From Entomortierella parvispora E1425 (Eukaryota > Fungi > Mortierellomycota): 64,000 nt of DNA. A program made the position numbers and the translations under genes. This document shows positions 30,019 to 46,485 of the stretch, in pieces. The notes under the pieces are model-generated. The model ran no database searches. It was not told the origin of the DNA and was given only the letters and a program-made list of their open reading frames with translations. How positions within the stretch are numbered: position 1 is the stretch's first letter; the number at the start of each line of letters is the position of its first letter. Location: assembly GCA_020891255.1 (NCBI GenBank), contig BQFW01000002.1, positions 620,001 to 684,000 of the forward strand, given 5' to 3'.

Positions 30019-32181
30019 TCAATCCACGTTACCGGCGCCTAGTCCCCAGAATTGGACGCGATCCCCAACCGCAACCCAGATCCCCTGCTGATCAGGCGAG
30101 AACTTGAGGCTGCTTACCGCCGGCCCTTTGACTTCCAAATCCTTAAGGCGTTCTCCTGTCTTGATGGACCACAGCGACACTTTGTGTTCCAGATTATCAG
30201 CTGCCAACAGCGTGTCCTCCACGTTGATGTCCAACCGCACCTTCGAAAACTGGTCTTGAACCTTACCTCGAAAGTCGAGCACAGACTTTGTGTACCGGTC
30301 GCCACTTCTGCTTCGGTTGCCTGCTCCAGAGCCGCCAGCGCCGCCCACGAACCGTTTGTCCCACATCGAAATCTCGCCATTCGTGGCGCCAGTGATTAAG
30401 TAGTGCTCACCAACGCGCCTCAGCGATTGAATCGAAGACTCTCGATGTCCAATTCCCTCAAGAATCGACTTTGCTCGCTTCTCCCTCATAAAGGGCAAGT
30501 GCTCCTTTGGATCTGGTCCCGATGCGTAACTCCCCGGTTGACTCAAATCAAAGATTCTCACCGATCCGTTCCTGCATCCAGCGTATATTACGTTCTGATC
30601 TGTTTGAGGCTCGATTGCCAGAGAAAAAACATCGCTCCCAGTCCACAAGACTTGTGAACCTCTGCCTGTGCTCAAATTGCTGGGAGTTGGGCTACTGAAA
30701 GATGTTGTTTCCCAGTCGCGGATCACTACCACCTTCTGGTCAGCTCCGAGTGCGACTGTGTCCTTGTTCACCTCGCTTGTCCAGATATTTGACTTCATCA
30801 GTGGAAAGAGAGCGAGAGTACTGGTTCTTGGTTCCCGAGACCAAGGAGCTCCCATGGGTCCATGTTGGATATGAAGTGTTCCTGATCGCCCCATGTCGCC
30901 CAGGTATGTTGTTCTAAAATTATACAGTCAGCAAGCAGTTACATGATTGTCAGTTCAGTGAGTTCGCAATGGGCGAGCCCTTGCCATTGAATATGTCCTC
31001 CTTTTTTGTATTCCACTTACATTAGGTAGTTGTCTGGAGTCAAATGCAGTGATGACAGTTCGGACGAGGCACCATTCAAATTCATCCATTGGTATTTAGT
31101 CTCTAGCGTATTCTCCGATACGTGATATCGCCATAATTCCCGTTGCCGTGACCCCATGTAGAGATCATTGTGCACCGCGTCGATCTATTGGTCCCACCCA
31201 AAAGACAAAGGTCGCCATTAGTATTTTCCATTCCTGATCAAGCTAGCGCAAAGCTTACACAACTCACCTCCAAAAATGTATAAGTCCCTCCATTCTCAGC
31301 CAAGGTAGGCTCGACTCGCCTATTCCTCTTCCAACGCCTTACTAACATGGCATGAATGTCACTACAACAAAAAAAAGATAGTATGTTAACTCGCAGTGTC
31401 TGTAGGAGTATGCAAGAGTATAAATGCTGTACATTTCCGTGCACCTTACCACAGCTGCCTGCGAGGAGAGCCAACTATTCCAAACTGACGATCCTGTAGA
31501 TACCAGCCCAAGCGCCTGTAATGAGTCATGGCCATCGGGAACCGAGAGCCGGTTTTACGTTGAATCGGATCCAGCTTGGGCTATCATTGAAAGTATAACA
31601 CCCGGTCAGTAGGTGATAAATGAAAGAAATCACAACTCCAACTCGATCTTGAACAAGACCTTTGGCGTCGTCTTTTCTCGGATGCTCTGTTGACTGAACG
31701 GATGTTGGCTACCAAGGGTATGGTTGGCGGTGATCTTGAAATACTTTTTCTTCTCGGGATCATAGAAGAACCCGGGTATCTCTCTAACAAGAGGAGTCGC
31801 ATCCGCCGCTGCGAGGGTAGCTTGCGTTGTTGAAGTCGAAGTGGATGCAGAAGTGGACGATGATGAACGATCATGTATCCGGCCCGCACGATGGGTATTA
31901 TAGAAGCCGCGGCTTTGGTGGCCTCTGCCTTGCTGGCTAGATTGACCAGAGCGTGAAGATCCGCGCTGGCTCTCATTATAGCGCGCTCGTTTGTGAATGT
32001 CCGCGTCTTGAGCATGACCATGTCCATTGGCACTTCCATTGGAATTGAAGCGATTGTTGACAGCATTGCGATTGACATGTCCTGGTTCCTGCCGTGACCC
32101 TGCGGCTGAGTTGTGTGCTCTACCCCTGCGGTGGGCCCAGTCCTTCTTCTTCTTGCCCTTGCTGGTATGCGTGCCTTCCAT
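30019..32181 (-). CDS. WD40 protein, DCAF4/WDR21-like
   Basis: EIPGFFYDPEKKKYFKI motif near the N-terminus, and WD repeats (YAGCRNGSVRIFD, LITGATNGEISMWD, KVSLWS). Confidence 0.75.
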
Positions 32182-32387
32182 GAGCGTGCTGTCAATGAAC
32201 AATGAAAGAGTCGTGCATGCAAGTGCATGTCTCGCTTGATCACCCTTCAAAAAAAGTCCAAAAAAAAAAAAAAAAAAACGCCACCGAAAATGAAATTTCC
32301 CCATTCCTCGTCCCTCGTATTTATCCCCCTTCCCCTCTTTTCATCTTTCATCACATTCACTCTTCATTCACACTCCACACGTCATCC

Positions 32388-34047
32388 ATGTTGGGAAAGA
32401 ACATCCTCTTTGGCGCATTCGCCATTCTCGCCTCCCTCGCCGCCACTGTCGCTGCTGACAATGTCCTCGCCCTCACCCCCGATGACTTTGACAAGGCAGG
32501 TCACCACTCATCGTGTCTCCCCTGGACACAAGAAAACCCCCACCGTAACTCATCCTAACGGTATCTTTATGAATCTCTTCATCTCAATAGACCATTGGCT
32601 CGACCCCTGCCCTCGTTGAGTTCTATGCTCCCTGGTGCGGACATTGCAAGGTTAGCATGGATTGGCATCTCGAGGGACAGACATTGCTTCGCATCTTTTT
32701 GTTTCATCTCATCGATGACTAATGCTCTCTTTCCTCCGTTCTCTTGCCACGTATTCTCCCCCTATTAGAGCCTTGCTCCTGTAAGAAAGATCTGGCCTTG
32801 AACTAACCTCCATATCCTTACATATATGGTCAATCCTCTCCCTGTGAGAAGAGCACCTTCTGCCGAGGCCAATGGACGTCACCAACTGATCGTTCTATTC
32901 GTTATATAAAAATAGGTCTATGAAGAGCTCGGACAGGCTTTTGCCGGCAAGAACGACAAGGTCTTGATTGCGAAGGTTGATGCCGATGCTCACCGCAAGC
33001 TCGGTTCTCGTTTCCACGTCACGGGTTTCCCCACCATCAAGTGGTTCCCTAACGGTGTCAATGGCAATTCTGAAGATTACCAAGGTGGACGTGATCTTGA
33101 TTCCTTGGCCGACTTTGTCTCCAAGCAGTCCGGTGTCAAGTCATCAATTGTCAAGGTTAATCCCTCGGTCACTGTCTTGACCGATGCTACATTTGATTCT
33201 AAGGTCTTGAACAGCGGCAAGAGCGCCTTGGTTGAGTTTTATGCCCCTTGGTGCGGACACTGCAAGAACTTGGGTAAATGACGTGAAAGAAACGAATCTA
33301 CGATTTGCAGCTTTCAGCCGAACAATTGGTCCTAACGAACAATTGATATCTTTTCTCCCTTCTAGCCCCTACCTACGAGAAGGTTGCCCAGGACTTCCTC
33401 AACGAGGAGAATGTACGGCGACTCTGGAACGAGGACTAAATGAAAGCTCAATAGGAAGATTACAAGGAAAAAGTGCTAACAGGAACCCCTTCTTCATGAT
33501 CATTGTCAAATAATAGGTTTTGATCGCCAACTTGGATGCCACCGTTGAGAAGAAGGTTGCCCAGAAGTACGGAGTGACTGGATACCCCACTATCAAGTTC
33601 TTTGCCCCCGACGGTACCGTTGAGGATTACCTGGGTGGACGTACCCAGCAGGAATTTATTGACTTCATGAACAAGAAGGCTGGTACCCAGCGTGTTGCTG
33701 GAGGTCTTTTGTCTGCTGAGGTTGGTCGTATTCCCGAGTTGGATACCTTGGCCCAGAAGTTTGTTGCCACCCAGAACCAGAGCGAGAAGAAGACCTTGTC
33801 GACCCAGGGCATTGAGTTGGCTGCGACCTTGAGCACTGACAATGCCAGCGCCAAGTACTATGGACGTTTCTTTGAGAAGGCCTTGGCCACTCCTACCTTC
33901 CCTACCACGGAAGCTGCTCGTTTGGCCAAGATTATCCAGGGCAAGTCTGTGAACCGTGCTCGTTTGGATGACTTCTCGATCCGCCACAACATCATCTCGG
34001 TTTTTGCTGAGGCCACCACCGCCCCCTCTGGAAAGGATGAGCTGTAA
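32388..34047 (+). CDS. tigA: Protein disulfide isomerase, ERp38/TigA (P5-like) type
   Basis: Signal peptide, two EFYAPWCGHCK thioredoxin motifs, ERp29-like helical C-terminal domain, C-terminal KDEL. Includes a 12-nt micro-exon at 32769-32780. Confidence 0.93.
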
Positions 34048-34361
34048 AAAGACGAATGGTAGAAGTCGTATAGCAAATAAAAAATCGATCGTTACGTCGA
34101 TATTTAACCTTGGTCCACTTGGGGGAAACATGACATTATTGAACGGACCAATTGATCCGTTTACAACAATAGATAAAGTCCAAGGGTCATCATTGGCGTT
34201 TTTATGTTCAAGGTTTGTTGGTTTACTCAATAAAAATACAATGTAGGGGTGGGGAATGAAGACGCATGTCCTGCAAGACCAAAGGGAGATATCTTGGAGA
34301 GGGGTCTGGTTGGGATATAAGTTGTCAGAACAGAGCTACTGACAGAGAGGAGACCTCTTTC

Positions 34362-35135
34362 TTAACAGCATTGAGCCCAGTCTTGGATGGTGATGAATGG
34401 CTGTTCACCCTTGGAATCTTGTGCAGGCGAGAAGGCCAACAAGGTTGGAGTGGAAGGGTAAAGACCACCGGCCGAGGCTGAAGAAGGAGAGACTGGAGAA
34501 CGACGCTGGCTGGCGTTGGAGCACATGGTGGGCATGACGGAGGACTGGGTTGAGGTCGTAGTATCGATGCGAAGCTTTGATGAGAACTTGCCAACCAGCA
34601 AAGGGGCTGTCGCCGCTGCTACTGGGGAAGTAGGAGTAGCAATCTGGATAGCAGGAGAAGGGACCGAGGGCAGTTCCAGGATGACCATTTCTTCATCTTC
34701 GTCCATCTCTGTGTGTCCCAAGGGGGGCGATCCAGGGGGGGAGTGCAACCCAGTCTTGGCGGGGTCATTCTCGGCGGTGGCCTTGGTCTCGGGCAGGTGC
34801 AAGTAGTACCGATCCGAGTCCATGGACAACTCTGTGTGAGAACCAAAGTAGACCCTCAGGGGCGTTCTTGTCTTTGTGACCGAGTCCACAAAGAGGGTGT
34901 TGTGCAACGAGGCCTTGGCTCTTTGGGCATCAAATGTGGACTCGTAGACGACAAAGATACGGCGAAAGGTGCGGATCGGCGAGAAGAAGCAAATAGGACC
35001 GTAGGAGGCCGCCTTGGCTCGGAGCTCGTTCATGAAGTCGGCATTGTCGAAATGAGAAGGCTCAAAGTTGGTCAGGGTCAAGGTGTTGGAGGGGATGGCA
35101 GCAGAGGCCAAAGGAGCAGAGGTGTCAATAGACAT
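34362..35135 (-). CDS. RCN1: Calcipressin/RCAN calcineurin regulator (intronless)
   Basis: RRM-like N-terminus (SPIRTFRRIFVVY...LRVYFG), YLHLP, SPPGSPP motif, C-terminal PFITIQDW (PxIxIT-like). Confidence 0.85.
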   Translation of the reverse strand: MSIDTSAPLASAAIPSNTLTLTNFEPSHFDNADFMNELRAKAASYGPICFFSPIRTFRRIFVVYESTFDAQRAKASLHNTLFVDSVTKTRTPLRVYFGSHTELSMDSDRYYLHLPETKATAENDPAKTGLHSPPGSPPLGHTEMDEDEEMVILELPSVPSPAIQIATPTSPVAAATAPLLVGKFSSKLRIDTTTSTQSSVMPTMCSNASQRRSPVSPSSASAGGLYPSTPTLLAFSPAQDSKGEQPFITIQDWAQCC

Positions 35136-37478
35136 GGCGTGTATGAAGAGGTGCTGTATGGTATAGACTGAGTGCTGATAACGACCAAGGGTCAATTGAA
35201 AGAGCAAGAGTTGAGACAGTGTGGGGCGAATTGCAGTATCAGTGAGTAAAAGTCAGAGAAGGAAGGATGTGGGTGAGGGGAGAAAGGAGGTTAGGGCTGG
35301 TCCCTTTTATACTGGTCCGAAGTGATTACAGAAATAAGAATGGGAGTGAGGGATTAGCCGATCGAGGGTATCACGATACGTCTTTTTTTTTTTTTTTTTT
35401 TTTTTTGCTGTAGCCCATGCTAGAACCATGATGCAGAAGAGAAGGTATGATGCGGGTTGCAGTAAAGAGGAAGTGCAGTCGTAGCCCCTTTGGGAATAGC
35501 ACACGGGAATGGAAGTCAAGGAAGGGTCTGCGTGGAAGGACAGAAACAATCCTCATGTGGACGAAAAGAGAAGCCTTCTCCGTTTCTTTATTTGGACGCA
35601 CGCACAGGGATGGAACCAGACCCAGCACCCACGCCCCGCTTAACAAACAGAGTTAGCTGGGGTAAACGGCAGTAATGGCCCAGGGGGAAGATGCAAAAAT
35701 GTGCCCTTCATTGGTGCCAACGGGCTGCTCCTCAGGAATACAGGGACAGAGTGCTATGCTTGGCCAGCCCGGCACTGATGCGGCCGTGCTGTGCATACCA
35801 GACATGTGTCGGTTCATTTCAAGTCCCTGCCCACGCAGCCCAGGTCTCTGTGGGGCTGGCTCTGAGGGTATCACTCACTCTGCTGGACTTACCCCAAAAT
35901 CAGTATGACAGTCAGCTTCTAGCGGGTGGGGTGCATGAGTATGAGTGCTAGGTCTATTCCTGGTTCTCGCCTGTTGGATCAGCTTATTGGACCATTGGAA
36001 TCCAATCTCTTGGCAACCAAGAGTCGATGACAGCAGCAGAGGGCATTTTGTTCTATTTTTTTATTTTATTTTTACGACCCTGTAGTCTGTGGTGACACGG
36101 GGGTTCCATCGATTGCGTCCATTGCATTGTCTGCATTCGCATCGCATGTTGGGACCACAGTCTGACACCGCTGCCCTTCGACTCCGTCCTCTTGCCCTTC
36201 TTAGAGAAGGTTGGGAACGTCGTTTCTATCCATCATGTTCAGTTGTTCAATGGCAGACCACGTCTGCGGCGCAGACAGAGGCCGTGAGCTCGGAGAACAA
36301 GTTTGATCCTTCTTTTGTTCCACTTTGGACACCTTTGTGCGCCTGCAAGGAAAGATAGATTTTGGCTGTCTCCTGCCCTAGGAGATCGAGATAGCAGACA
36401 ATTGTCTGACACAGAGCTAGAAAGGCGACGGGGGCTCTATACAACTCTCTGATCCACTGGCGTTTCTTCTCAGCTTTCTTTGTCTTCCACGGGCACCATC
36501 TGTCTGTCCTGCAGCAGCTTCTTGGGCGTCTTTTTTATTTTTGGGTTCAACGATTTCCCCGACAGTGGAAAGAATGTGAAGAATACAACAAACAAAAGCT
36601 GGCGAATGTCCGTCCGGTGGAAAAAGAACTCTTCTCGGCTTTCTTTTCCTTTTCTCGTTTGTGGGGGAGAGAGCAAAGGAATGCAGGGACAGCCTTCTTT
36701 TTTGACGTTCTTCAATTGAGCTTACTTCGGCTCAACTCTCCCCCCACCCCCCCATTTCCTTTTGACATATCCCATTTCCTCGTCAAACCCTCTCCACGGC
36801 CATTCTCTCTTTTTGCATGAGCCTCTGTCTGTCCTGAACAGCGCTCATGTCCATCTTTGTCATGCATCCCCTCCTCCTTTCCCCCCTGCCTTTTAGTCCG
36901 GGTAAAAATATAATAAAATCCACTCCCCCTAGCAGCAAAAAAAAAAAAAAAAGATAAAGATGCTCACTCTCACGCAAGATTGAAAAAGAATTCTCTTGCG
37001 AAAAAGAACGGAAGCATGCCGAGTGGAGGATAGGTTCAAGAGGAAGACGGGAAGCACCAACCCAAATCCCTTTTCCACTCACCAAGGCACCCGGACCCCT
37101 CCGCCTCTTCTGGTCCCTTGGCCCCTGCTTGCTCTCCCCCCCATGCTTCCTTCCCTGCTCTCTCGGCTCTTGCTCGGCCTCAATTGCCGAATGGAACGCG
37201 GCCTTCTTTTTTTTACACTCTCACTCATTTGCCTTCTTTTTTACTTCCTGGGAAAATTGGAGGGTCCAATCACGCTATGGTCGTACAAGATATGCTTTCT
37301 CTTTTCATTCTCGCAGTAAGATTCAAGGGCAAACACTCTTTTTTTTGAAGATATTAGACGTGTTCTGTATATGAAAGTGCGCGAGGTATATTATGCAGGA
37401 AAGAGGGGGACATTAATATGAAGTTGAAGGATGAGGGAGGTTCGTTAACTGTCATCAGATGATAGCTCCTGAAGATCC

Positions 37479-38087
37479 TTAAAGGAGCATGGATCCAGCA
37501 GCCATGGTGAACAAGGCCGCAGTGGAGGCAAGGGCGGCCTTGACAGATCCTGAACCTGTACTGGTGCTCTTATCCTCCTTTCCAGCAGTTCCAGTGGTAG
37601 TCTCAGCAGGGGCGGTGGTGGTGGCAGTAGCAGTGGCGGGGTCGACAGCAGCTGTGGTGGTGACGGGAGCGACCACGACGGGATCCTCACCCTTGATAGT
37701 GAACTGGGCAGAGTACGACTGCAAGGGAACGGTGTTGACGTGCAACGAGTAAGTTGATCCGGTGGTCAAGCCCTTGGGGAGAGTGATCTTGGCAGACTTG
37801 TTCTCGAGGCAGTTCAAAGTACCGAGCGAACGGATGCCGGGAACGCGCATCTGATCAGTGCTGCCCGGAATGTGATCCTTGGACATGTAAAGGACAATGT
37901 CGAGCGCCTCCTTATTACCGGGCTTGCAGTAGTTGGACCAAGAAACGGTCTGAGTCTCACCAGCGGTCCAGACCGAGGCAGAGACGGGCTCGGAGTAGAA
38001 AAGGCGACCCTCATCAGGGGTGAAGTGTGCAGTAACAGAGGCGATAGCCATGGAGGCGACGGCGGCGATGAGAATGCAGAACTTCAT
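37479..38087 (-). CDS. Secreted, probably GPI-anchored Ser/Thr-rich cell-wall protein (Kre9/Knh1-like N-terminal domain)
   Basis: Signal peptide MKFCILIAAVASMAIASVTA, WTAGETQTVSW, YSAQFTI, Thr/Ala stalk, hydrophobic C-terminus. Confidence 0.8.
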   Translation of the reverse strand: MKFCILIAAVASMAIASVTAHFTPDEGRLFYSEPVSASVWTAGETQTVSWSNYCKPGNKEALDIVLYMSKDHIPGSTDQMRVPGIRSLGTLNCLENKSAKITLPKGLTTGSTYSLHVNTVPLQSYSAQFTIKGEDPVVVAPVTTTAAVDPATATATTTAPAETTTGTAGKEDKSTSTGSGSVKAALASTAALFTMAAGSMLL

Positions 38088-38729
38088 GTTTAGTTTGAGT
38101 ATGTAAAGGGAGGTGAAGGAGGGATAGTTATATGGTTGTGTCAAGAAAGTCGGCGACGATCAGGGTCGCCGTGCCTTTTTATAACAATGCAGACTTCGGA
38201 CGAACTGCCTGCCCACTCCCGCCGTTTACCACACGTCGGAAACGATGACCTTCGGTTTCTCGAATTCTCTCGACAGAAGCATCAACAAGAGCTTTAATGA
38301 GACACAAGAACGCGCTTCTTGCAATCTCCAAGGAAATCCAGCGCACTCGCGCAAATTGACCAGAAACCAGAGACGGTGGGTGTTCGACTGGCTCCCAACT
38401 TTTTTCTTTAAATATCGTTTTTCAAGCCAACAACGCACTCCAGGTAGTCTATTCATCACGGCAGCCGTGAAGAAACTAAATCCAGCCTATCTGCAGCAAC
38501 CAAAGGCAGCCCAGTTTATTTGACAAGGAGCTATACAAAATCATACCATACTTCAAGAGCAAAAATGAATGGAAGACCGCTGATTGTCTGATGGTGGTTG
38601 GTGGGTGGTATGAATTGAACATGATTCATGTTCGAGCAAAAAGAATTCAAAACGGTTCATTCTCCTACACGGCTTCGATCCGGCTGAGAGAGCTTGTACC
38701 AGGGCCATGTCAGGTCTCACTCCCAGCAC

Positions 38730-40574
38730 TTATTCTTCCATTTTCAGAGGCTCTTCTTGTTCCTGCGAGGTCTGATCCTGCGAGGTCTGATCCTGCGAGG
38801 TCTGATCCTGCGAGGTCTGGTCCTGCGAATATTGCTGATGTGAGGACTGTTCCTGTGAGGACTGTTCCTGTGAGGACTTTTCCTGTGAGGACCTGTCCTG
38901 CGAGGTTTGTTCCTGCAAGGTTTGTTCCTGCGAGGCTTGTCCCTGCGAAGCTTGTCCCTGTGAGGTTTGTCCCTGTGAGGTCTGTTCCTCCCAGGCTTGT
39001 TCTTGAGAGGCCTGTCCCTGCGAAGCTAGCTCTTGAGAGGCCTGTCCCTGCGAAGCTAGTTCTTGAGAGGCCTGTCCCTGCGAAGCTTGTTCCTGAGAGG
39101 CCTGTCCCAGCGAAGCTTGTTCTTGAGAGGCCAGCTCCTGGGACGAAGGCAAAGGTCGTGGTTTGTTGAAGTTGGAATCCCGCAGCTTGAAAGCTTCCCT
39201 TTTCTTCCTGATCAAATCCGAGGCAGCCGCGCTGATGCCGCAATGACCTCCATGAACTCTCAGTGCCAACTTTTCCACCTTAACTTCATTGTAAAGCCGC
39301 ATGGGAGGGCCGTTTCGATAGTGCGGGTTTTGGTGCACGGTGCATGGAAGCGTGTCCAAATCATCTGTCGTCAATTCGTATTGATCCAAAGCGCGAGTTC
39401 GTGTGATTCTGTTGACGTATCCATCGTTGGGATCCTTCTTTGCCCTCAGCTTCAGTGGATGCCGCCCATAGTAAGCAAGTCGGCAGTTCCGACAAAGCAG
39501 CCAGGTTAGATCATCGTCGTCCTTATCTTTAATTGGCAGTGTAACTTCGGACTTGGTCAGGCCCTTCATTGTCAGATCATGGCATCGGTCGCAGATGAAA
39601 TATGAGTACTTGCACGCAAGGGCCATAAACGTCTTGTACTTGCTTTTTGGAGGACCCAGGTTGTTCTTCTCGCAGATTGTTTTCCAGGCTGGGTAGGACC
39701 GGCAGCCGTCCAGCCACGTCGTGTTCACCAAGGAGATGACTGCAACCTGAGAGAGCGGTAGGTACGATAGTATGACATGCCACACCTCAGTCGGAACCCA
39801 AGCGCAAGGATTTGTTCCTTTGGGAGCTGCAGCCCGTATCTCCATAACAGATACAGCGTCCTGCTTGGTCTCCCCGTGTTGCCTCTTCGTCCTCTTGGTC
39901 GGTCTTGACTCTGGGTCCAGAGCTTTGTGTTCATCACCGTCTTCGTCCTCCTTCTTGACTTTTCGTTTTTTGCCCCCCACTCTAGGCTTTTCAGCCACGC
40001 TTTCAATCACAGTCGCAGTAGGGGCTTTCGTCTTTTTGAAGGACGTCGAGGCGGTGGAGGTCGACTTGGCTTTCTTGGTGGAGGCTTTGGCGGGGGTTTT
40101 GGCCTTTTTTGTGGGAGTCGTGGGGGTCGCGGTAGTTGATGGGTTGTCAGAGGTCAAGGAAGTCGTGGGAACTGGATGATGTTCAGGATCGACACCTTGT
40201 TTCTTCTTGAGAACCTTTTTCCTGGATTTGAGGTCCGAGCTATCTTTTGCCTTTAGAACGGGAACTTGCTTCGATGCCGCCGACTTCTTGGGGCCCATCG
40301 TGGTCGCGTCCCGCTTTGATTTGGACGTTTTTGTACCCGCGTTGGTCTCGGAGGTATCCATATCAGCGCCATCAGCAGTGCCATCACTCGTGCTGTGTTG
40401 CACCTTGGGCTGAATTCGCTTCTTCTTGGCTGAAGAAATGCGAGCCTTGGCGGCTTGCTGTGCCCTGAACGTGGCCGCCACCTCCGCCAGAGCTGCCCTA
40501 GCTTGCTCCTCGGCTAGTGCCTGTGCTTGTGCTTTCTCGGCCACCGCTGCCAATCGAGACGATGTTCGCACCAT
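38730..40574 (-). CDS. F-box protein with XPA-like Zn-finger/DNA-binding module and C-terminal SQ-repeat array (intronless ORF)
   Basis: Likely start MVRTSSRL at 40574. Basic disordered N-terminus, F-box VPTEVWHVILSYL, CDRC..CRNC, RITRTRALDQYEL..DL..NPHY..PMRLY..VHGG, then (SQxQx)26. Confidence 0.85.
   Translation of the reverse strand: MVRTSSRLAAVAEKAQAQALAEEQARAALAEVAATFRAQQAAKARISSAKKKRIQPKVQHSTSDGTADGADMDTSETNAGTKTSKSKRDATTMGPKKSAASKQVPVLKAKDSSDLKSRKKVLKKKQGVDPEHHPVPTTSLTSDNPSTTATPTTPTKKAKTPAKASTKKAKSTSTASTSFKKTKAPTATVIESVAEKPRVGGKKRKVKKEDEDGDEHKALDPESRPTKRTKRQHGETKQDAVSVMEIRAAAPKGTNPCAWVPTEVWHVILSYLPLSQVAVISLVNTTWLDGCRSYPAWKTICEKNNLGPPKSKYKTFMALACKYSYFICDRCHDLTMKGLTKSEVTLPIKDKDDDDLTWLLCRNCRLAYYGRHPLKLRAKKDPNDGYVNRITRTRALDQYELTTDDLDTLPCTVHQNPHYRNGPPMRLYNEVKVEKLALRVHGGHCGISAAASDLIRKKREAFKLRDSNFNKPRPLPSSQELASQEQASLGQASQEQASQGQASQELASQGQASQELASQGQASQEQAWEEQTSQGQTSQGQASQGQASQEQTLQEQTSQDRSSQEKSSQEQSSQEQSSHQQYSQDQTSQDQTSQDQTSQDQTSQEQEEPLKMEE
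38754..39143 (-). repeat. Coding tandem repeat, 26 x 15 nt (pentapeptide S-Q-E/G/D-Q-A/T/S)
   Basis: Units such as tcgcagggacaggcc, tctcaagaacaagct and tcgcaggatcagacc. Counted from the translation. Confidence 0.95.
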
Positions 40575-40824
40575 TCTGAGAGTAAATTTGGGATGGGATG
40601 GAAGATTGGCGCCTTGTGATGCGGTAACAGATGTCAGTTGTGGGGACGAATGTAAAGAGATAAAGGGTGAATGCGAGCAACTGAAGAAGACAATTGTCAG
40701 TGGAGTATGAAGTGAAAACATCATCACGGACCCTTGCAACAAATGATTCATCACGTGAATCGCAACATGATTCTTGTCAATCAGTGTTGCTGATTGAAAG
40801 TGATATGCTCCTGCAAAAAGCACC

Positions 40825-40831
40825 TATAAAA
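40825..40831 (+). promoter_or_regulatory. TATA-like box upstream of the Cys/Asp peptide gene
   Basis: TATAAAA about 50 nt upstream of ATG 40880. Similar boxes precede several other genes in the window. Confidence 0.45.
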
Positions 40832-40879
40832 AAGAACCATCGCCCTTCTACTGTAAAAACCCAGATCTCCATACTCACA

Positions 40880-41215
40880 ATGTTGGCCTTTACCTCCAAG
40901 AACACATGTCTCTGTGCAATTGTCCTCACCTTACTTTCGGTCATGTCGGCTGAACCTCTTGTTGCGGCATCAGGAACGACAGCCAGTGCCGCTGCTGCCG
41001 TCATCCCAGGCCAAGGAGCGATCGGTGGCATCCACAAAACGACCTCGACTTCTGTGTTTGCCTCTGGTTCAGGTGGCTCCCATCTGCCTTCTGGATCTCT
41101 ACACAAGCGCAGGGATCACGGCAAGAGCTGTTGTCATGACAACTGCGATGACTGTTGTGATGACTGTTGTGACGACCGCTGCGACGATTGTTGCGACGAT
41201 TGTTGCGACGACTGA
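40880..41215 (+). CDS. Small secreted precursor (111 aa): signal peptide, propeptide, KR(R) site, Cys/Asp-rich (CCDD)n peptide
   Basis: MLAFTSKNTCLCAIVLTLLSVMSA|EPLV...LHKR|RDHGKSCCHDNCDDCCDDCCDDRCDDCCDDCCDD*. Single exon with an upstream TATA-like box. Confidence 0.72.
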   Translation: MLAFTSKNTCLCAIVLTLLSVMSAEPLVAASGTTASAAAAVIPGQGAIGGIHKTTSTSVFASGSGGSHLPSGSLHKRRDHGKSCCHDNCDDCCDDCCDDRCDDCCDDCCDD

Positions 41216-41913
41216 CGGTCGCGACGACTGCCGCTGCCATTCACACGAGTCGCGTGGCGAATTGAACATCAACGCGTTCCTTCTGCTCCATGAACTCTTT
41301 TCACTTTTGGATTTGACCCCTCCTTCTTCTAGGAGTCAAAATAAAGCTTTCTTCGCGACAAATGTCGCGTTTCCTTTCACAAGCCCGGCTATCATTAACA
41401 TCAACATCGATAGCTCAGTTACATATCGTGTGTGCGTCTGTGTGTGTCTGTGTGTGCTTTGCTCCTTCCTCGGCCACTGCAAGAAAATCAGGCGCTCAGT
41501 GCTCTCAATCGACTCTTGTCATCACATCACTTCTTTTTGCCCTGGCTCAGCATGCTTAATTTTGTCCATTTGGTCGCATGTCCGTTGTTCGCTCTATCCC
41601 CTCTTCTTTCATTCTTTCTTTCTTCCATCTCCAAATCACACCACCCTTGAAAGTTAACTTCTGCCAAGCTTACTGCCCTCCGCATTCGTTCTCCATCATT
41701 CTCTCTCTCTCCTTCTGCCTCTGCGTTTCTTTACTCCTTCAACGCTCCTCCGTCTCTCATACCCAATCTAGAAAGCAGCAGTCTGCCATAAAATCGCAAT
41801 CGCCTAACGGTCTCCACAACCCTCGCCTTGTTTTTTCTGCCCCACTGTTGTCAATCAGCACTTTTTTTTTTGCTCCAAAACAAGGAATATCCCTCACACC
41901 TACATTCTCCACC

Positions 41914-43388
41914 ATGACCCTTGCGTCGATGTACAAAACAGACTATGTCCAGTCTTTGGATCAACAATCACAAACGAATCTGAACTCGGCCTGGTTAAAC
42001 GACAAAGGTACAGAGAGAATCAAGACGGAAGAAAAAAATCGTTCAGGATCCTCCCCAACGAACCGTTCCGTCGCCTTTATTTATTTTACGGTGGTACTAT
42101 CACGCGAGGTCAGGGCAAACAACAAAAGTGGAAAGAGACTGACTGATTCCTCCTCTTCATTGCCATTGGGCCATGCCCCTCACTTGTAGGAGTCTGGATT
42201 ACCAACTTCATTCTCATCTGCATGATCAAGTTCTTCTTCAGCATCATTCCTGGCATCACACCCGAGCTCTCATGGACCCTGACCACTCTCACATATAACG
42301 TCGTAAGTCTGCAGCACAGAAGAGCAAAAAAAGAACCTCCCTAACATGAAAGCGAAGGAGAGCAAGAAAGCTTTTTGGACTGCGGCGGACGGCACGTCGA
42401 CTGGACATCCGAGAAGATTTTCGTGACGAAGCCCAAAAAAAAACGTGAGCGTGATGAACGTGCTTGACGGACCCGACCCAGCTGAAGGAAACAGAAAGAC
42501 GACGTGTGTGATCATCTTGTGGGGGGAGGGAGGGGGCTGTCGAATCACAACAAAAGAGGGATGTGACAACAAGCACAGGGGCCCAAGGATGGCCAATGCA
42601 TCAAAGGAAAGAAAAACAGTTGGCAGTAACGAAAAGGGGAGAGGGCAAACCATTAACCTCGCTGACCCAAGGGTTGACAGGAGGTCGCGTGTGCTTCCTG
42701 TGCTCAAATGCCTGGGCACAGCGGCGGGGAGAGTTTAGAGAATTATTGTTTGTCATTCTTGAACCCATGTCCACTCTCTTACCAACTCTGAATTTTATCC
42801 ATATTTAGGGAAGCTACATTATGTTCCATGCCGTGACAGGTGTCCCCTTTGAGTTGTTCTCACAGGGTGCCTTTGACTATATCACGCTCTGGGAGCAGAT
42901 TGATGAAGGCGTCCAGTTCACAGCAACGCGAAAGTACTTGACCACTGTGCCCATTGTTCTGTAAGTAAGCCGTTCATTTGATAACTCTGAAAAAGTCAAG
43001 AGGATCGTGAGTTCAGGAGTAGGCAAGGATGGTGCACGGTCTGTCATGCATGAAAAAAACGGAACCTTTTTTTTTCTTTCTTTCAACAACATGCTGACGA
43101 CCCCACGGACACGCAGTTCCAACAAAGGCGGCTGGGCCAGGCAACTCAAAGGTCAAAAAGCTCATCAACATTTCATCCGACTCGAGAAACTGCCTGCTGT
43201 ACTCACTTCCTTTCTTTTCATGTCCCAATTGCTCTAGATTCTTGCTCAGCACACACTACACGCACTATGCTCCTTTTGCATTCTTTGTAAACTTGGTCGC
43301 GACGGTGATCAATCTGATCGCAAAGCTACCTGCCATGCACCAAGTGCGTCTCTTTGATATCAACCAGAAGATTGACAGTCGCGGATAA
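41914..43388 (+). CDS. ORM1: ORM1/ORMDL sphingolipid-synthesis regulator
   Basis: NLNSAWLNDK|GVW..SWTLTTLTYNV|GSYIMFHAVTGVPF..TLWEQID.GVQFTATRKYLTTVPIVL|FLLSTHYTHY..AKLPAMHQVRLF. Confidence 0.94.
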
Positions 43389-43550
43389 GTTGAAGGTCTT
43401 TTCATGATGCCTGTTCCACAAGATGCTCCTCCCACCAATCTCTTCAATTGCAATAAATACCACAAAATATGTGAACAAAGATGTCTGTTTCCTCCAAAAA
43501 CGATTTATTTAAGAGAGAAACGGTGTCTTAAGCCGATCGTGAAAGGCAGT

Positions 43551-44303
43551 TTAGTAGAAGTAACCCAAAACCTTTCCTCCGGTGTGGCGGCGACGGGCCT
43601 CCTCGTGGTCCATGATACCGGCGGAGGTGGTGAGGATGATGTAACCGAACTGGCGGGAAGGCAAGAGACGGGCAATCCACTTCTCGATCTCGTTCAACTT
43701 GATGTTGAAACGGGGGGAGATGACACCGGTCTTGTTGATGCGTCCGATGAGCTGGACGACGATCTTTCCGGAGCGGTGGTCATCGATCTCCTCGAACTCG
43801 CCGATGTAACCTGTATCAGAGACGATCCATTGAGAATGATTAGTAACCAATGAATTGATATCTTTGCAAAAATGACCACAGATCCCGAAATAAAATGAAT
43901 GGGAATTGGTAATAGGAATGTCTCCACCCTTTAAAGGCTAGAGGCCACTGTGAGAGTGCCAAAAGCTTGTAAGAAGTGTAGTTGTTCTTCCGGAGCCTTA
44001 AAAGATAAATATTGAGTCGTATGAAAAAAGTAGCGTGTCGAAATAAATCAATCGCCTTCAAATTTCAGCAATATACATCCAGTTATAACCCCGGTGTGCG
44101 TGTGTATGTATGTTGAATGGTTGTCGTATGGAGCAAAGAGTAATCAAAACTCTGATTTCCGAAAACCTACCGTGCTTCTGCATCAAGGACAAGAACTTGA
44201 CAATGACCTTGGAGGAAGGACGGATCAAGACCTGGCGCTTGCCACGCTTCTCAGCGTTGTTGATGTTGTTGAGGCAGTCGTTCAAGACGGAGATGCGGAC
44301 CAT
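43551..44303 (-). CDS. RPS22: 40S ribosomal protein uS8 (S22/S15a)
   Basis: [37 protein letters not shown]|[27 protein letters not shown]. Intron at 43811-44170. Confidence 0.98.
43916..44095 (-). ncRNA. snR44: Intronic H/ACA box snoRNA, snR44 orthologue candidate
   Basis: Two hairpins, H box AGAACA (43988-43983) and ACA+3 nt (43921-43919). Both pockets sit 14 nt from their box. Guides ATAACT/TTTAA and CTTCTTACA/TTTAAAG are complementary to the flanks of 18S U106 and 25S U1056 as recalled for yeast. Confidence 0.85.
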
Positions 44304-45115
44304 TTTGATAAATGCTGCTATATCGGAGAGTATACAAACAAAGCGAAAAAGGTGAGTCTTCCATGAAAATACCAATATCTCATATGAGTGTCGCCTTCGT
44401 CGCGCAGACCCTAATTGCTTCCTTGGAATCCAAGGTTACAAGAAGAGAAGGGAGAAGAGATTCATAAAGGAATCGGTCGTGTCCAGGCCAGTCTGCAACG
44501 TATCAGCTCAAGCATCCCTTCATAGACTCCCCGACCTGAACGATCCACTTTAGCCTCCGAAGAGGATAAAATAAAAAAGATCAGCGGTTCATCTCAAGAT
44601 TGCGAGAAGTGAGAGCAGTCTGACACTGTAATGGACAAAAGAAATGGTTGAAAGGAGAAAGTGTCCATGGTCGAGTGGATAGATGATGGCGGATCAAAAT
44701 CCTGAATTCATTGATCAAAGTTTTTTCTTTTCGAGATCTCATGGAATCCGACTGACGATGGCGAGTAGAAAAAGAAGAAAAAATCCCGGTCCTTCGTTGG
44801 TCGAGTGTATGTTGAGGGTTGATGCAATCACAGGTCCAAGCATTGTTGGTAGATGGATTCTCCGTGTCGATGGATGGATGGATGGGTCCTTGTCGGACGG
44901 ATCTCGGTCGTTGACGCTGCAACACACCTTTGAAAAGTTAGAGAAGGATCAGACAGGGATCGAGCGCGGAGATGAAAGATATGCGAAAATGTAATCTGGT
45001 CACGTGAAGAACCTCCAATGATCGCTTTTTCTGCATCTGACTGAACTGCATGAACCCTCCAGGAAGACTCACATTCCTCCCCAGCAACCCTGGTCCTCTT
45101 CCCCATAAAAAGGTC

Positions 45116-46485
45116 ATGCTTCGCGCTACATCCGCCCTCTTCTCTAAAGCATCCTCCATGTCTTCCTCCCTCGCATTCAAGCCCTGCAAGCTGGCATTAG
45201 TCCAGCTCGCCGTCACTGCTGACAAGAGCGCGAACCTCGCCAATGCACGCGCTCATGTTCTCGAGGCCGCCAACAACGGCGCCAACGTTATTGTTCTTCC
45301 TGTAAGATACCAGACGACCTGGACTCTCTTCTATACGGCGGTTGTCCGCATATTGCTCACTGTCTTCTTACTTTTAATAACGGTACTGGCTCTCTAGGAA
45401 TGCTTCAATTCGCCCTATGGCACATCCTTTTTTCGGGAGTACTCAGAGAGTATCAAAGACGGTCCATCTGTGAAGGCCCTCTCTGAAATGGCCAAGGTTC
45501 GCTCCTTCTCCTTCGTTCATGGTCGTTTACACCCACCTTGTAGCTCTTGAGGATAGATAAGTACCAACTCTCGACTGACATTCGATTCTTTTTAAAATCA
45601 TAGGAAGCGAAAGCCTACCTGATCGGAGGTTCTATCCCTGAACGCGACCCCACCAACGACAATATTTACAACACCTGCACTGTCTACAACCCCGCAGGAG
45701 AGCAAATCGCCGCTCATCGAAAGATTCATCTCTTTGATATTGATGTCCCTGGCAAGATCCGATTTCAGGAAAGCGAAACGCTGACCGCCGGCGAGTCGCT
45801 GACTCATGTCGATACAGGTAAGAAATCTTTGGTACTTGATCTCTGTTATTTTTCTCACGCCAATTGACCTTAAATATGATTTTTTTTCTTGGCTAGAATA
45901 TGGAAAGATTGGCGTTGGTATTTGCTATGACATCCGATTCCCGGAGCCGGCCATGATCGCTGCTCGCAAGGGTAAGAAACAATATTTCTAGCCTGAATCA
46001 TGGTTCGAAGTGGTGCATGACATTTAACGCCACTCCTCTCTCTCTCATGTCCCTCTGCTCTTAGGCTGCTTTGCTATGATCTATCCTGGAGCCTTCAATA
46101 TGGTTACTGGACCACTGCACTGGGAGTTGTTGCAAAGAGCTAGGGCTGTCGACAATCAGGTGTATGTGGCTGCCTGCTCTCCTGCACGCGATGTGACAGC
46201 TGGATACCACGCATGGGGTCACTCAACTGTTGTCGCGCCAACGGGCCAAGTCGTCGCAACTATGGAGGAAAACCAGGGCATTGTCTATGCAGACCTTGGT
46301 ATGATTGATTTCTATGCGCTGAGCTCCAGTAGTCATATTACCAGACCTTGCTAATAACCAACCAACCGCCTTCTTCTTTGTGCATAGATCCTCAAGCTTT
46401 GAACGACTTCCGTCAGAGTGTTCCTTTGTATGCTCAGCGTCGATTCGACTTGTATGCAGATGTTGCCAATACCAAGCCACAATAA
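45116..46485 (+). CDS. NIT2: Nitrilase-superfamily omega-amidase (Nit2/yeast Nit3-like)
   Basis: KLALVQL, LP|ECFNSPYG, HRKIHLFDIDVPGKIRFQESETL, GICYDIRFPE, LHWELLQRARAVDNQ, QRRFDLY. Confidence 0.93.

Follow-up and report, generated by a model that had tools for sequence, protein, structure and literature searches.

Phytochelatins and the synthetic (Glu-Cys)nGly peptides (EC8-EC20) are short, disordered polymers of an acidic residue and Cys, which vary in repeat number and rely on composition over fold. Natural phytochelatins are made enzymatically, carry gamma linkages and reside in the cytosol or the vacuole, and the EC peptides are man-made. When displayed outside cells, alpha-linked synthetic (Glu-Cys)n peptides bind Cd, Zn and Cu (PMC4292183). 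Metallothioneins are small; about a third of their residues are Cys, spaced as CC and C-x-x-C, and aromatics are few. They have no signal peptide or pro-region, are not polyanionic, and their Cys positions are fixed within a family. The metallothionein-like Mmt1 of Magnaporthe resides in the cell wall and acts as an antioxidant (PMC9036806). A further design is that of fungal Kex2-processed precursors, namely the alpha-factor type and the Kex2-processed repeat proteins (KEPs), which follow the secretory route and in which a signal and a pro-region precede a Lys-Arg and then the peptide (PMC6339444, PMC7329392). KEPs are defined by multiple peptide copies, with a dibasic site bounding each. Defensin-like antifungal proteins, knottins and hydrophobins are small, secreted, Cys-rich and often lineage-specific; they are usually cationic or amphipathic and show an even, conserved Cys pattern and a confident fold. 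The zincophores Pra1 of Candida and AspF2 of Aspergillus are secreted, capture metal extracellularly and have Cys/His-rich C-terminal tails. Mortierellaceae rank among the commonest fungi in soil, and soils that are acidic or rich in metals often contain them in abundance; to our knowledge, little is known about how they handle metals extracellularly.

We analysed a stretch of 64,000 nucleotides from Entomortierella parvispora E1425 (contig BQFW01000002.1, positions 620,001 to 684,000), hereafter the window. The ORF at 40880-41215 on the plus strand is an intact, uninterrupted single-exon CDS of 111 codons followed by TGA, and its orthologues (94-155 aa) are also annotated as single-exon genes. 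Its start codon lies in the context cacaATG. The closest orthologue has no counterpart of the in-frame upstream ATG at 40805, which supports 40880 as the start. The TATA-like box reported in the initial annotation is present as TATAAA at 40825-40830 (plus strand), 55 nt 5' of the ATG, and we treat it as tentative; a TATAAA also occurs at -77 in the Gryganskiella orthologue and is absent from the other three promoters compared. On the same strand, an AATAAA read from the sequence at 41340-41345, 125 nt past the stop, is a possible polyadenylation signal.

The initial annotation had divided the encoded protein into a signal-like N-terminus, a Ser/Gly/Ala-rich spacer, HKR-R and a Cys/Asp tail. 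Re-reading the ORF together with its hydropathy, we recover all these parts. The N-terminus contains one Lys, then a 13-residue hydrophobic core and then a small-residue c-region, and the Kyte-Doolittle 9-residue means peak at 2-3 across residues 8-16. We infer secretion from this profile, which is classical for a signal peptide; a basic n-region, a hydrophobic core and a small-residue c-region recur in all eight aligned family members. Hydropathy and alignment predict a signal peptide of residues 1-23 or 1-24 (40880-40948, plus strand) with cleavage near VMS|AEP. It is followed by a Ser/Gly/Ala/Thr-rich pro-region of about 54 residues (residues 24-77; 40949-41110, plus strand), delimited by alignment, which carries the family motifs PG-x-G-A and KTTSTS and ends in Leu74-His75-Lys76-Arg77, directly before Arg78. 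The predicted kexin (Kex2-type) site is Lys76-Arg77-Arg78 (41105-41113, plus strand). As for the cut point, the earlier reading HKR|R stands with respect to the basic site itself; the peptide had been taken to begin at Asp79. Arg77 is the invariant P1 arginine in the orthologue alignment, so the cut probably falls after Arg77 and the released peptide would start at Arg78, with 34 residues.

The tail, Arg78-Asp111 (41111-41212, plus strand), is polyanionic, with 12 Cys, 14 Asp, 2 His, five CC pairs and a net charge of -11. It is about 35% Cys and about 41% Asp, shows C-D-D-C spacing and contains no aromatic residue; this combination of Cys and Asp is unusual. As described before, the 33 residues Asp79-Asp111 hold all 12 Cys and 14 Asp in 12-nt units, of which we count seven. 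Tandem Repeats Finder reports a repeat encoding (C-C/x-D-D) units at 41144-41214 (plus strand; period 12, 5.9 copies, 84% matches). The synonymous variation noticed earlier is also there (TGT 8 / TGC 4; GAC 9 / GAT 5), and where repeat units differ, it is mostly by a third-position C/T exchange in the Cys/Asp frame.

An open frame is by itself weak evidence for a gene here, since the repeat leaves four of its six frames open. We therefore asked whether the ORF is a chance product of a microsatellite-like repeat of 12-nt units that lies in intergenic DNA, with the F-box/XPA gene on one side and ORMDL on the other. Besides the open frames, two database results suit such a non-gene. A word-indexed protein search with the window protein gave 748 candidates and none at E <= 1. 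A 15-billion-protein collection, which may omit records of this genome, held no exact match to the window protein or to its paralogue on C11 (see below). Separately, a metagenome scan with the single protein matched 600 pattern stretches and confirmed none. Performing a full phmmer/HMMER pass over 1.84 billion representative proteins, we find five relatives of the window protein (E 1.9e-22 to 3.6e-5); a sixth came from a profile search. Four of the relatives are named, from Linnemannia gamsii, L. elongata, Gryganskiella cystojenkinii and Mortierella sp. GBA35; all four are called 'hypothetical' and all belong to Mortierellaceae, which fits the earlier guess of a mortierellomycote source. The closest relative (E 2e-22, 65% identity) comes from soil metagenome contigs; the six contigs that bear it are identical in DNA and do not increase the population data. 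All relatives (94-155 residues) have a common layout of a signal-like N-terminus, a spacer with the motifs PG-x-G-A and (K)TTS, a basic site whose last residue is Arg, and a tail of Cys/Asp or Cys/Glu/Asp. The initial annotation had made its reading depend on homologues with a conserved signal/KR/CCDD layout, and these occur in at least three other genera.

The genomic position is conserved as well. In Gryganskiella and both Linnemannia species, the Cys/Asp gene lies directly upstream of ORMDL, Ribosomal_S8 (RPS22) and CN_hydrolase (nitrilase). A tblastn of the loci from these genomes against the window places the same genes at 41.9-45.8 kb. A divergent XPA_C gene lies upstream both in the window (38.7-40.6 kb) and in the contigs of the closest orthologue. 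Comparison with the closest orthologue gives a dN/dS of 0.25 at a dS of 0.93, with 0.26 for the part before the basic site and 0.16 for the tail, which shows purifying selection. Between genera, pN is 0.24-0.42 against a pS of 0.57-0.82, with synonymous sites largely near saturation. Orthologues, conserved synteny and dN/dS raise the ORF above chance, and we regard 40880-41215, with high confidence, as a real gene. The non-gene explanation is nearly refuted already and we hold it to be extremely improbable: four other genomes contain an orthologue at this position that keeps the frame and the layout, pN is much lower than pS, other annotators called the same single-exon model, and changes in tail length are always in whole codons. 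That the gene encodes a secreted pre-pro-protein is, in our judgement, very probable.

The conserved block extends further in some species. The order shared with Linnemannia over window positions 31300-45800 is a WD40 gene, a PDI-type gene, a small gene, the Cys/Asp gene, ORMDL, RPS22 and the nitrilase-family gene. The F-box/XPA gene lies within the conserved block in the window and in Gryganskiella and is missing from that of Linnemannia. The PDI-type gene encodes two thioredoxin domains and ERp29, and its nearness to a gene for a Cys-rich secreted peptide is probably a coincidence.

We compared the tails across the family. They range from 20 to 83 residues and contain 6-26 Cys, sometimes an odd number (12, 7, 10, 26, 6, 11 and 10), with variable spacing. 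The Cys residues stand mostly as CC pairs, and the net charge of the tail is -9 to -41. Several members have His or Trp/His clusters beside the Cys/Asp block, and some orthologues carry Trp or Tyr. Throughout these changes, C/D/E/H make up 69-90% of the tail residues in every member of the window's subfamily. Cys, Asp, Glu and His are the four classical metal-ligand side chains. Since length and Cys number vary while this fraction stays at 69-90%, the tails speak for a function that depends on composition and against a fixed scaffold of disulfides; judging from the aligned family, it is the composition of the tail that selection keeps.

Structure prediction and domain searches gave no fold or family. 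AlphaFold run with the family alignment returned a mean pLDDT of 47.7 and a pTM of 0.11, with no secondary structure and no fold, and the tail had a pLDDT below 50. A Pfam scan at E up to 10 found no family for the window protein, and the scan of paralogues and orthologues found nothing beyond chance compositional matches. Among the latter, a Keratin_B2_2 match in one orthologue reached 24 bits against a cut-off of 27, and a Trypan_PARP match also stayed below its cut-off; both are compositional. A PDB sequence search with the tail gave no match, and an ESM Atlas search with two proteins gave no usable match.

We set these properties against the systems introduced above. The tail shares with phytochelatins and EC peptides the short, disordered acid-Cys polymer of variable repeat number. 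It differs from them in being natural, ribosomal and Asp-based, with paired Cys, a signal peptide and a pro-region, and its metal binding is a prediction. The peptide is encoded in an ORF, whereas phytochelatins are non-ribosomal products of phytochelatin synthase with a gamma-Glu-Cys linkage. Twelve Cys in 34 residues, five CC pairs and the absence of aromatics are metallothionein-like in size and Cys content. Unlike the cytosolic metallothioneins, which have no signal, the whole family conserves a signal-like segment and a pro-region (54 residues here), and the searches found no Pfam family and no PDB match. The order of a predicted signal, a pro-region and a Lys-Arg resembles that of KEPs; we rejected a strict KEP identity because there is only one basic site, Lys76-Arg77-Arg78, and the 4-residue units lie inside a single peptide. 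We also rejected a fixed-scaffold Cys-rich peptide of the defensin, knottin or hydrophobin type: the window peptide is likewise small, Cys-rich, predicted to be secreted and lineage-specific, but Cys number and spacing vary in the family, some counts are odd, the charge is -11 and the pLDDT is 47.7. The zincophores Pra1 and AspF2 are folded proteins of about 300 residues, belong to a defined family and have a transporter-gene partner, and no such domain or partner is found here. What the window protein does share, feature by feature, is the design of an unnamed Mortierellaceae family of Cys/Asp-tail pre-pro-peptides, namely the signal, the spacer motifs, the Arg-ending site, a tail of >65% C/D/E/H and the position upstream of ORMDL. 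In the literature on Cys/Asp-rich secreted fungal peptides, Mortierella metallothioneins and KEPs in Mucoromycota, we found no description of this family, and the KEP survey describes no such family. It thus appears to be a new lineage-restricted family, so far seen only in Mortierellaceae, and a putative variant of kexin-processed secreted peptides and of Cys-rich metal-ligand peptides.

The basic site was examined in the alignment of eight family members. The P1 Arg is invariant, P2 is K, R or N (mostly Lys/Arg), and P4 is Leu or Met. One orthologue carries a monobasic Asn-Asn-Arg in place of the dibasic site. The P1/P2/P4 pattern of the family agrees with kexin preferences, and Rockwell and Fuller (1998) reportedly found that Kex2 prefers an aliphatic P4. 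Kexin-type P-domain protease genes are present in the source genome. Taken together, the alignment makes kexin cleavage of the precursor a likely prediction. Two adjacent kexin-type P-domain matches lie at C4:2515437-2520041 on the minus strand. The second of them has in-frame stops in a six-frame read, which may be introns or mark a decayed copy.

Performing protein and pattern searches of the same assembly (38.9 Mb, 20 contigs), we found three further genes with a signal, a basic site and a Cys/Asp block, two of them with His runs beside the block. The C11 gene (C11:1457996-1458541, minus strand; 1381-1926 of the extracted locus) encodes 182 aa with a signal, a conserved pro-domain, Lys-Arg, (CCDx)n and a Gly/Phe/His-rich end. 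Its pro-domain is strongly conserved, with the core motif ANTDIAPQVNVAPTIPIPY. Orthologues of this gene exist in Gryganskiella, Linnemannia and Haplosporangium; a Lys-(Lys)-Arg stands right before the Cys/Asp tail in four of five, and the Haplosporangium orthologue has no basic site at that position. No Pfam family was found for the C11 protein, and AlphaFold on the alignment of this second subfamily gave a pLDDT of 48.2 and no fold. A profile-profile comparison of the two subfamilies reached 97% probability over 26 columns only. Since this link covers only the KR site and the Cys/Asp stretch, common descent of the window and C11 subfamilies is plausible rather than proven. The C13 gene (near 2,600,800 on C13, plus strand; 1372-1827 of the extracted locus) encodes a signal, Ser-Lys-Arg, (CDDD)n, a His run and a Pro/Val/Gly-rich end. 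The C4 gene (C4:1795366-1796260, minus strand; 1498-2394 of the extracted locus) encodes a signal, a long Gly/Pro-rich body and a terminal (CDDD)n. These last two genes, predicted to encode secreted low-complexity proteins, suggest a modular set of Cys/Asp-block proteins in E. parvispora. Pattern matches at C4:1228571 and C13:311021 were rejected as family members, being antisense of poly-Gln tracts. The genome also contains two phytochelatin synthase (PF05023) genes, at C11:491530-492054 and C12:562012-562787, both on the plus strand.

The initial annotation had proposed either an extracellular metal chelator or biomineral nucleator, or a disulfide-stapled sink for cationic antimicrobials. 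That the tail consists almost only of metal-ligand residues favours the chelator version. The variable number and spacing of Cys, with some odd counts, argue against the disulfide-stapled one. In the mechanism that we infer, the signal peptide would route the precursor into the ER and the secretory pathway, and a kexin-type protease, most likely in the Golgi, would cut after Lys76-Arg77. This would release, or at least expose, the 34-residue intrinsically disordered, polyanionic, thiol-rich tail to the wall or the medium, where it would serve as a composition-driven ligand of metal cations. The carboxylates would draw cations and act as hard ligands, while the paired thiols and occasional His would be soft, high-affinity ligands. 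The dense negative field would be expected, on general chemical grounds, to raise the thiol pKa and slow oxidation. The tail might thus buffer, immobilise or scavenge metals at the hyphal wall or in the soil solution. We tentatively prefer this reading of a kexin-released metal-cation binder, akin to a secreted ribosomal phytochelatin or metallothionein, while rating it somewhat below an even chance; the prediction that metal binding is the main function of the tail is equally tentative. A bolder version is rather unlikely in our estimate. It holds that these would be the first natural, ribosomal and secreted phytochelatin-like chelators, a class of kexin-released (Cys-Cys-Asp-Asp)n metallophores or metal-immobilising peptides, whose polyanionic surroundings keep the thiols reduced and draw cations, and whose repeat number evolves fast by slippage to tune capacity.

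Several observations weigh against a metal function. The ER is oxidising, and Cys residues on this route normally end up in disulfides; metallothioneins and phytochelatins, for their part, reside in the cytosol or the vacuole. The two phytochelatin synthase genes are already present and leave no gap to fill, and the orthologue with Asn-Asn-Arg has no dibasic site. The promoters give no support either. The upstream regions of the window gene and its closest orthologue align poorly, and promoter footprinting across the 500-nt upstream regions of five orthologues found no shared 7-mer or longer. In the same five promoters, we found no conserved SreA-GATA, ZRE/ZafA, Mac1/Ace1, MRE, CDRE, Yap1 or STRE motif; known motifs for iron, zinc, copper, MRE, calcineurin or Yap1 are thus not conserved among them.

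The same oxidising secretory route, which favours disulfides, suits a polyanionic component of the wall or matrix that would cross-link by inter-chain disulfides, as keratin-associated high-sulfur proteins do, with its poly-Asp binding chitosan. Mucoromycote walls contain chitosan, which is polycationic. Variable and odd Cys counts would fit unordered intermolecular disulfides, one orthologue has the below-threshold compositional Keratin_B2_2 match, and the C13 and C4 paralogues fuse the Cys/Asp block to long, wall-protein-like Pro/Val/Gly-rich sequence. However, cleavage at the conserved basic site would detach a 34-residue peptide that has no anchor (no GPI signal, no Pir-type repeat), and thiolates form less readily in so negatively charged a tail, which slows disulfide exchange. 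We consider such a cross-linker unlikely. A further rival turns on the charge. Asp is 41% of the tail, the net charge is -11, paralogues have (CDDD)n and Asp runs of up to five, a C11 orthologue has a run of nine, and poly-Asp is known to bind calcium minerals. By binding Ca2+, or calcium oxalate or phosphate at their surfaces, the peptide might influence how crystals grow or dissolve, and its Cys residues would then be needed for cross-linking only. This leaves unexplained that Cys, usually in CC pairs, is conserved as much as Asp in every member, whereas typical mineral-binding proteins rely on Asp, Glu and phospho-Ser without Cys; nor was a conserved calcineurin-type motif found in the promoters. 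We give this reading little credence.

A bioactive peptide appears just as improbable. Such a peptide might be antimicrobial itself, of the anionic type, or divert cationic antimicrobials as a decoy; it might also serve as a signal or target Burkholderia-related endobacteria by analogy to legume NCR peptides. Many Mortierellaceae carry Burkholderia-related endobacteria. Strain E1425 itself hosts a Mycoavidus endobacterium (PMC8759367), and the design of signal, pro-region, KR and peptide is that of pheromones and other secreted peptides (PMC6339444, PMC7329392). Against this, a defined sequence or Cys framework is the norm for signalling and antimicrobial peptides, whereas here composition alone is kept and the length varies four-fold. 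No receptor or tailoring genes lie nearby; the neighbours are housekeeping genes in conserved synteny. We rejected a RiPP reading on the same ground, as these housekeeping neighbours in conserved order include no tailoring enzymes.

If the metal-binder reading is true, the family would represent a new kind of extracellular metal ligand in fungi, built on a phytochelatin-like principle of acid plus thiol. A family of so far unannotated 'hypothetical proteins' would thereby be explained, and bioremediation or metal sensing would gain a ready-made chelator that can be genetically encoded. Should the tail turn out to cross-link the wall or bind minerals, the family is still a clear case of selection on composition, not on sequence, in a secreted peptide.

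We also noticed conservation 3' of the gene. Window positions 41216-41710, which follow the stop codon, show about 67% identity to the contig of the closest orthologue over about 500 nt, which exceeds the expectation for a plain intergenic spacer. This stretch may be a 3' UTR or the promoter/5' UTR of ORMDL, and a (GT)n microsatellite lies inside it at 41428-41456.
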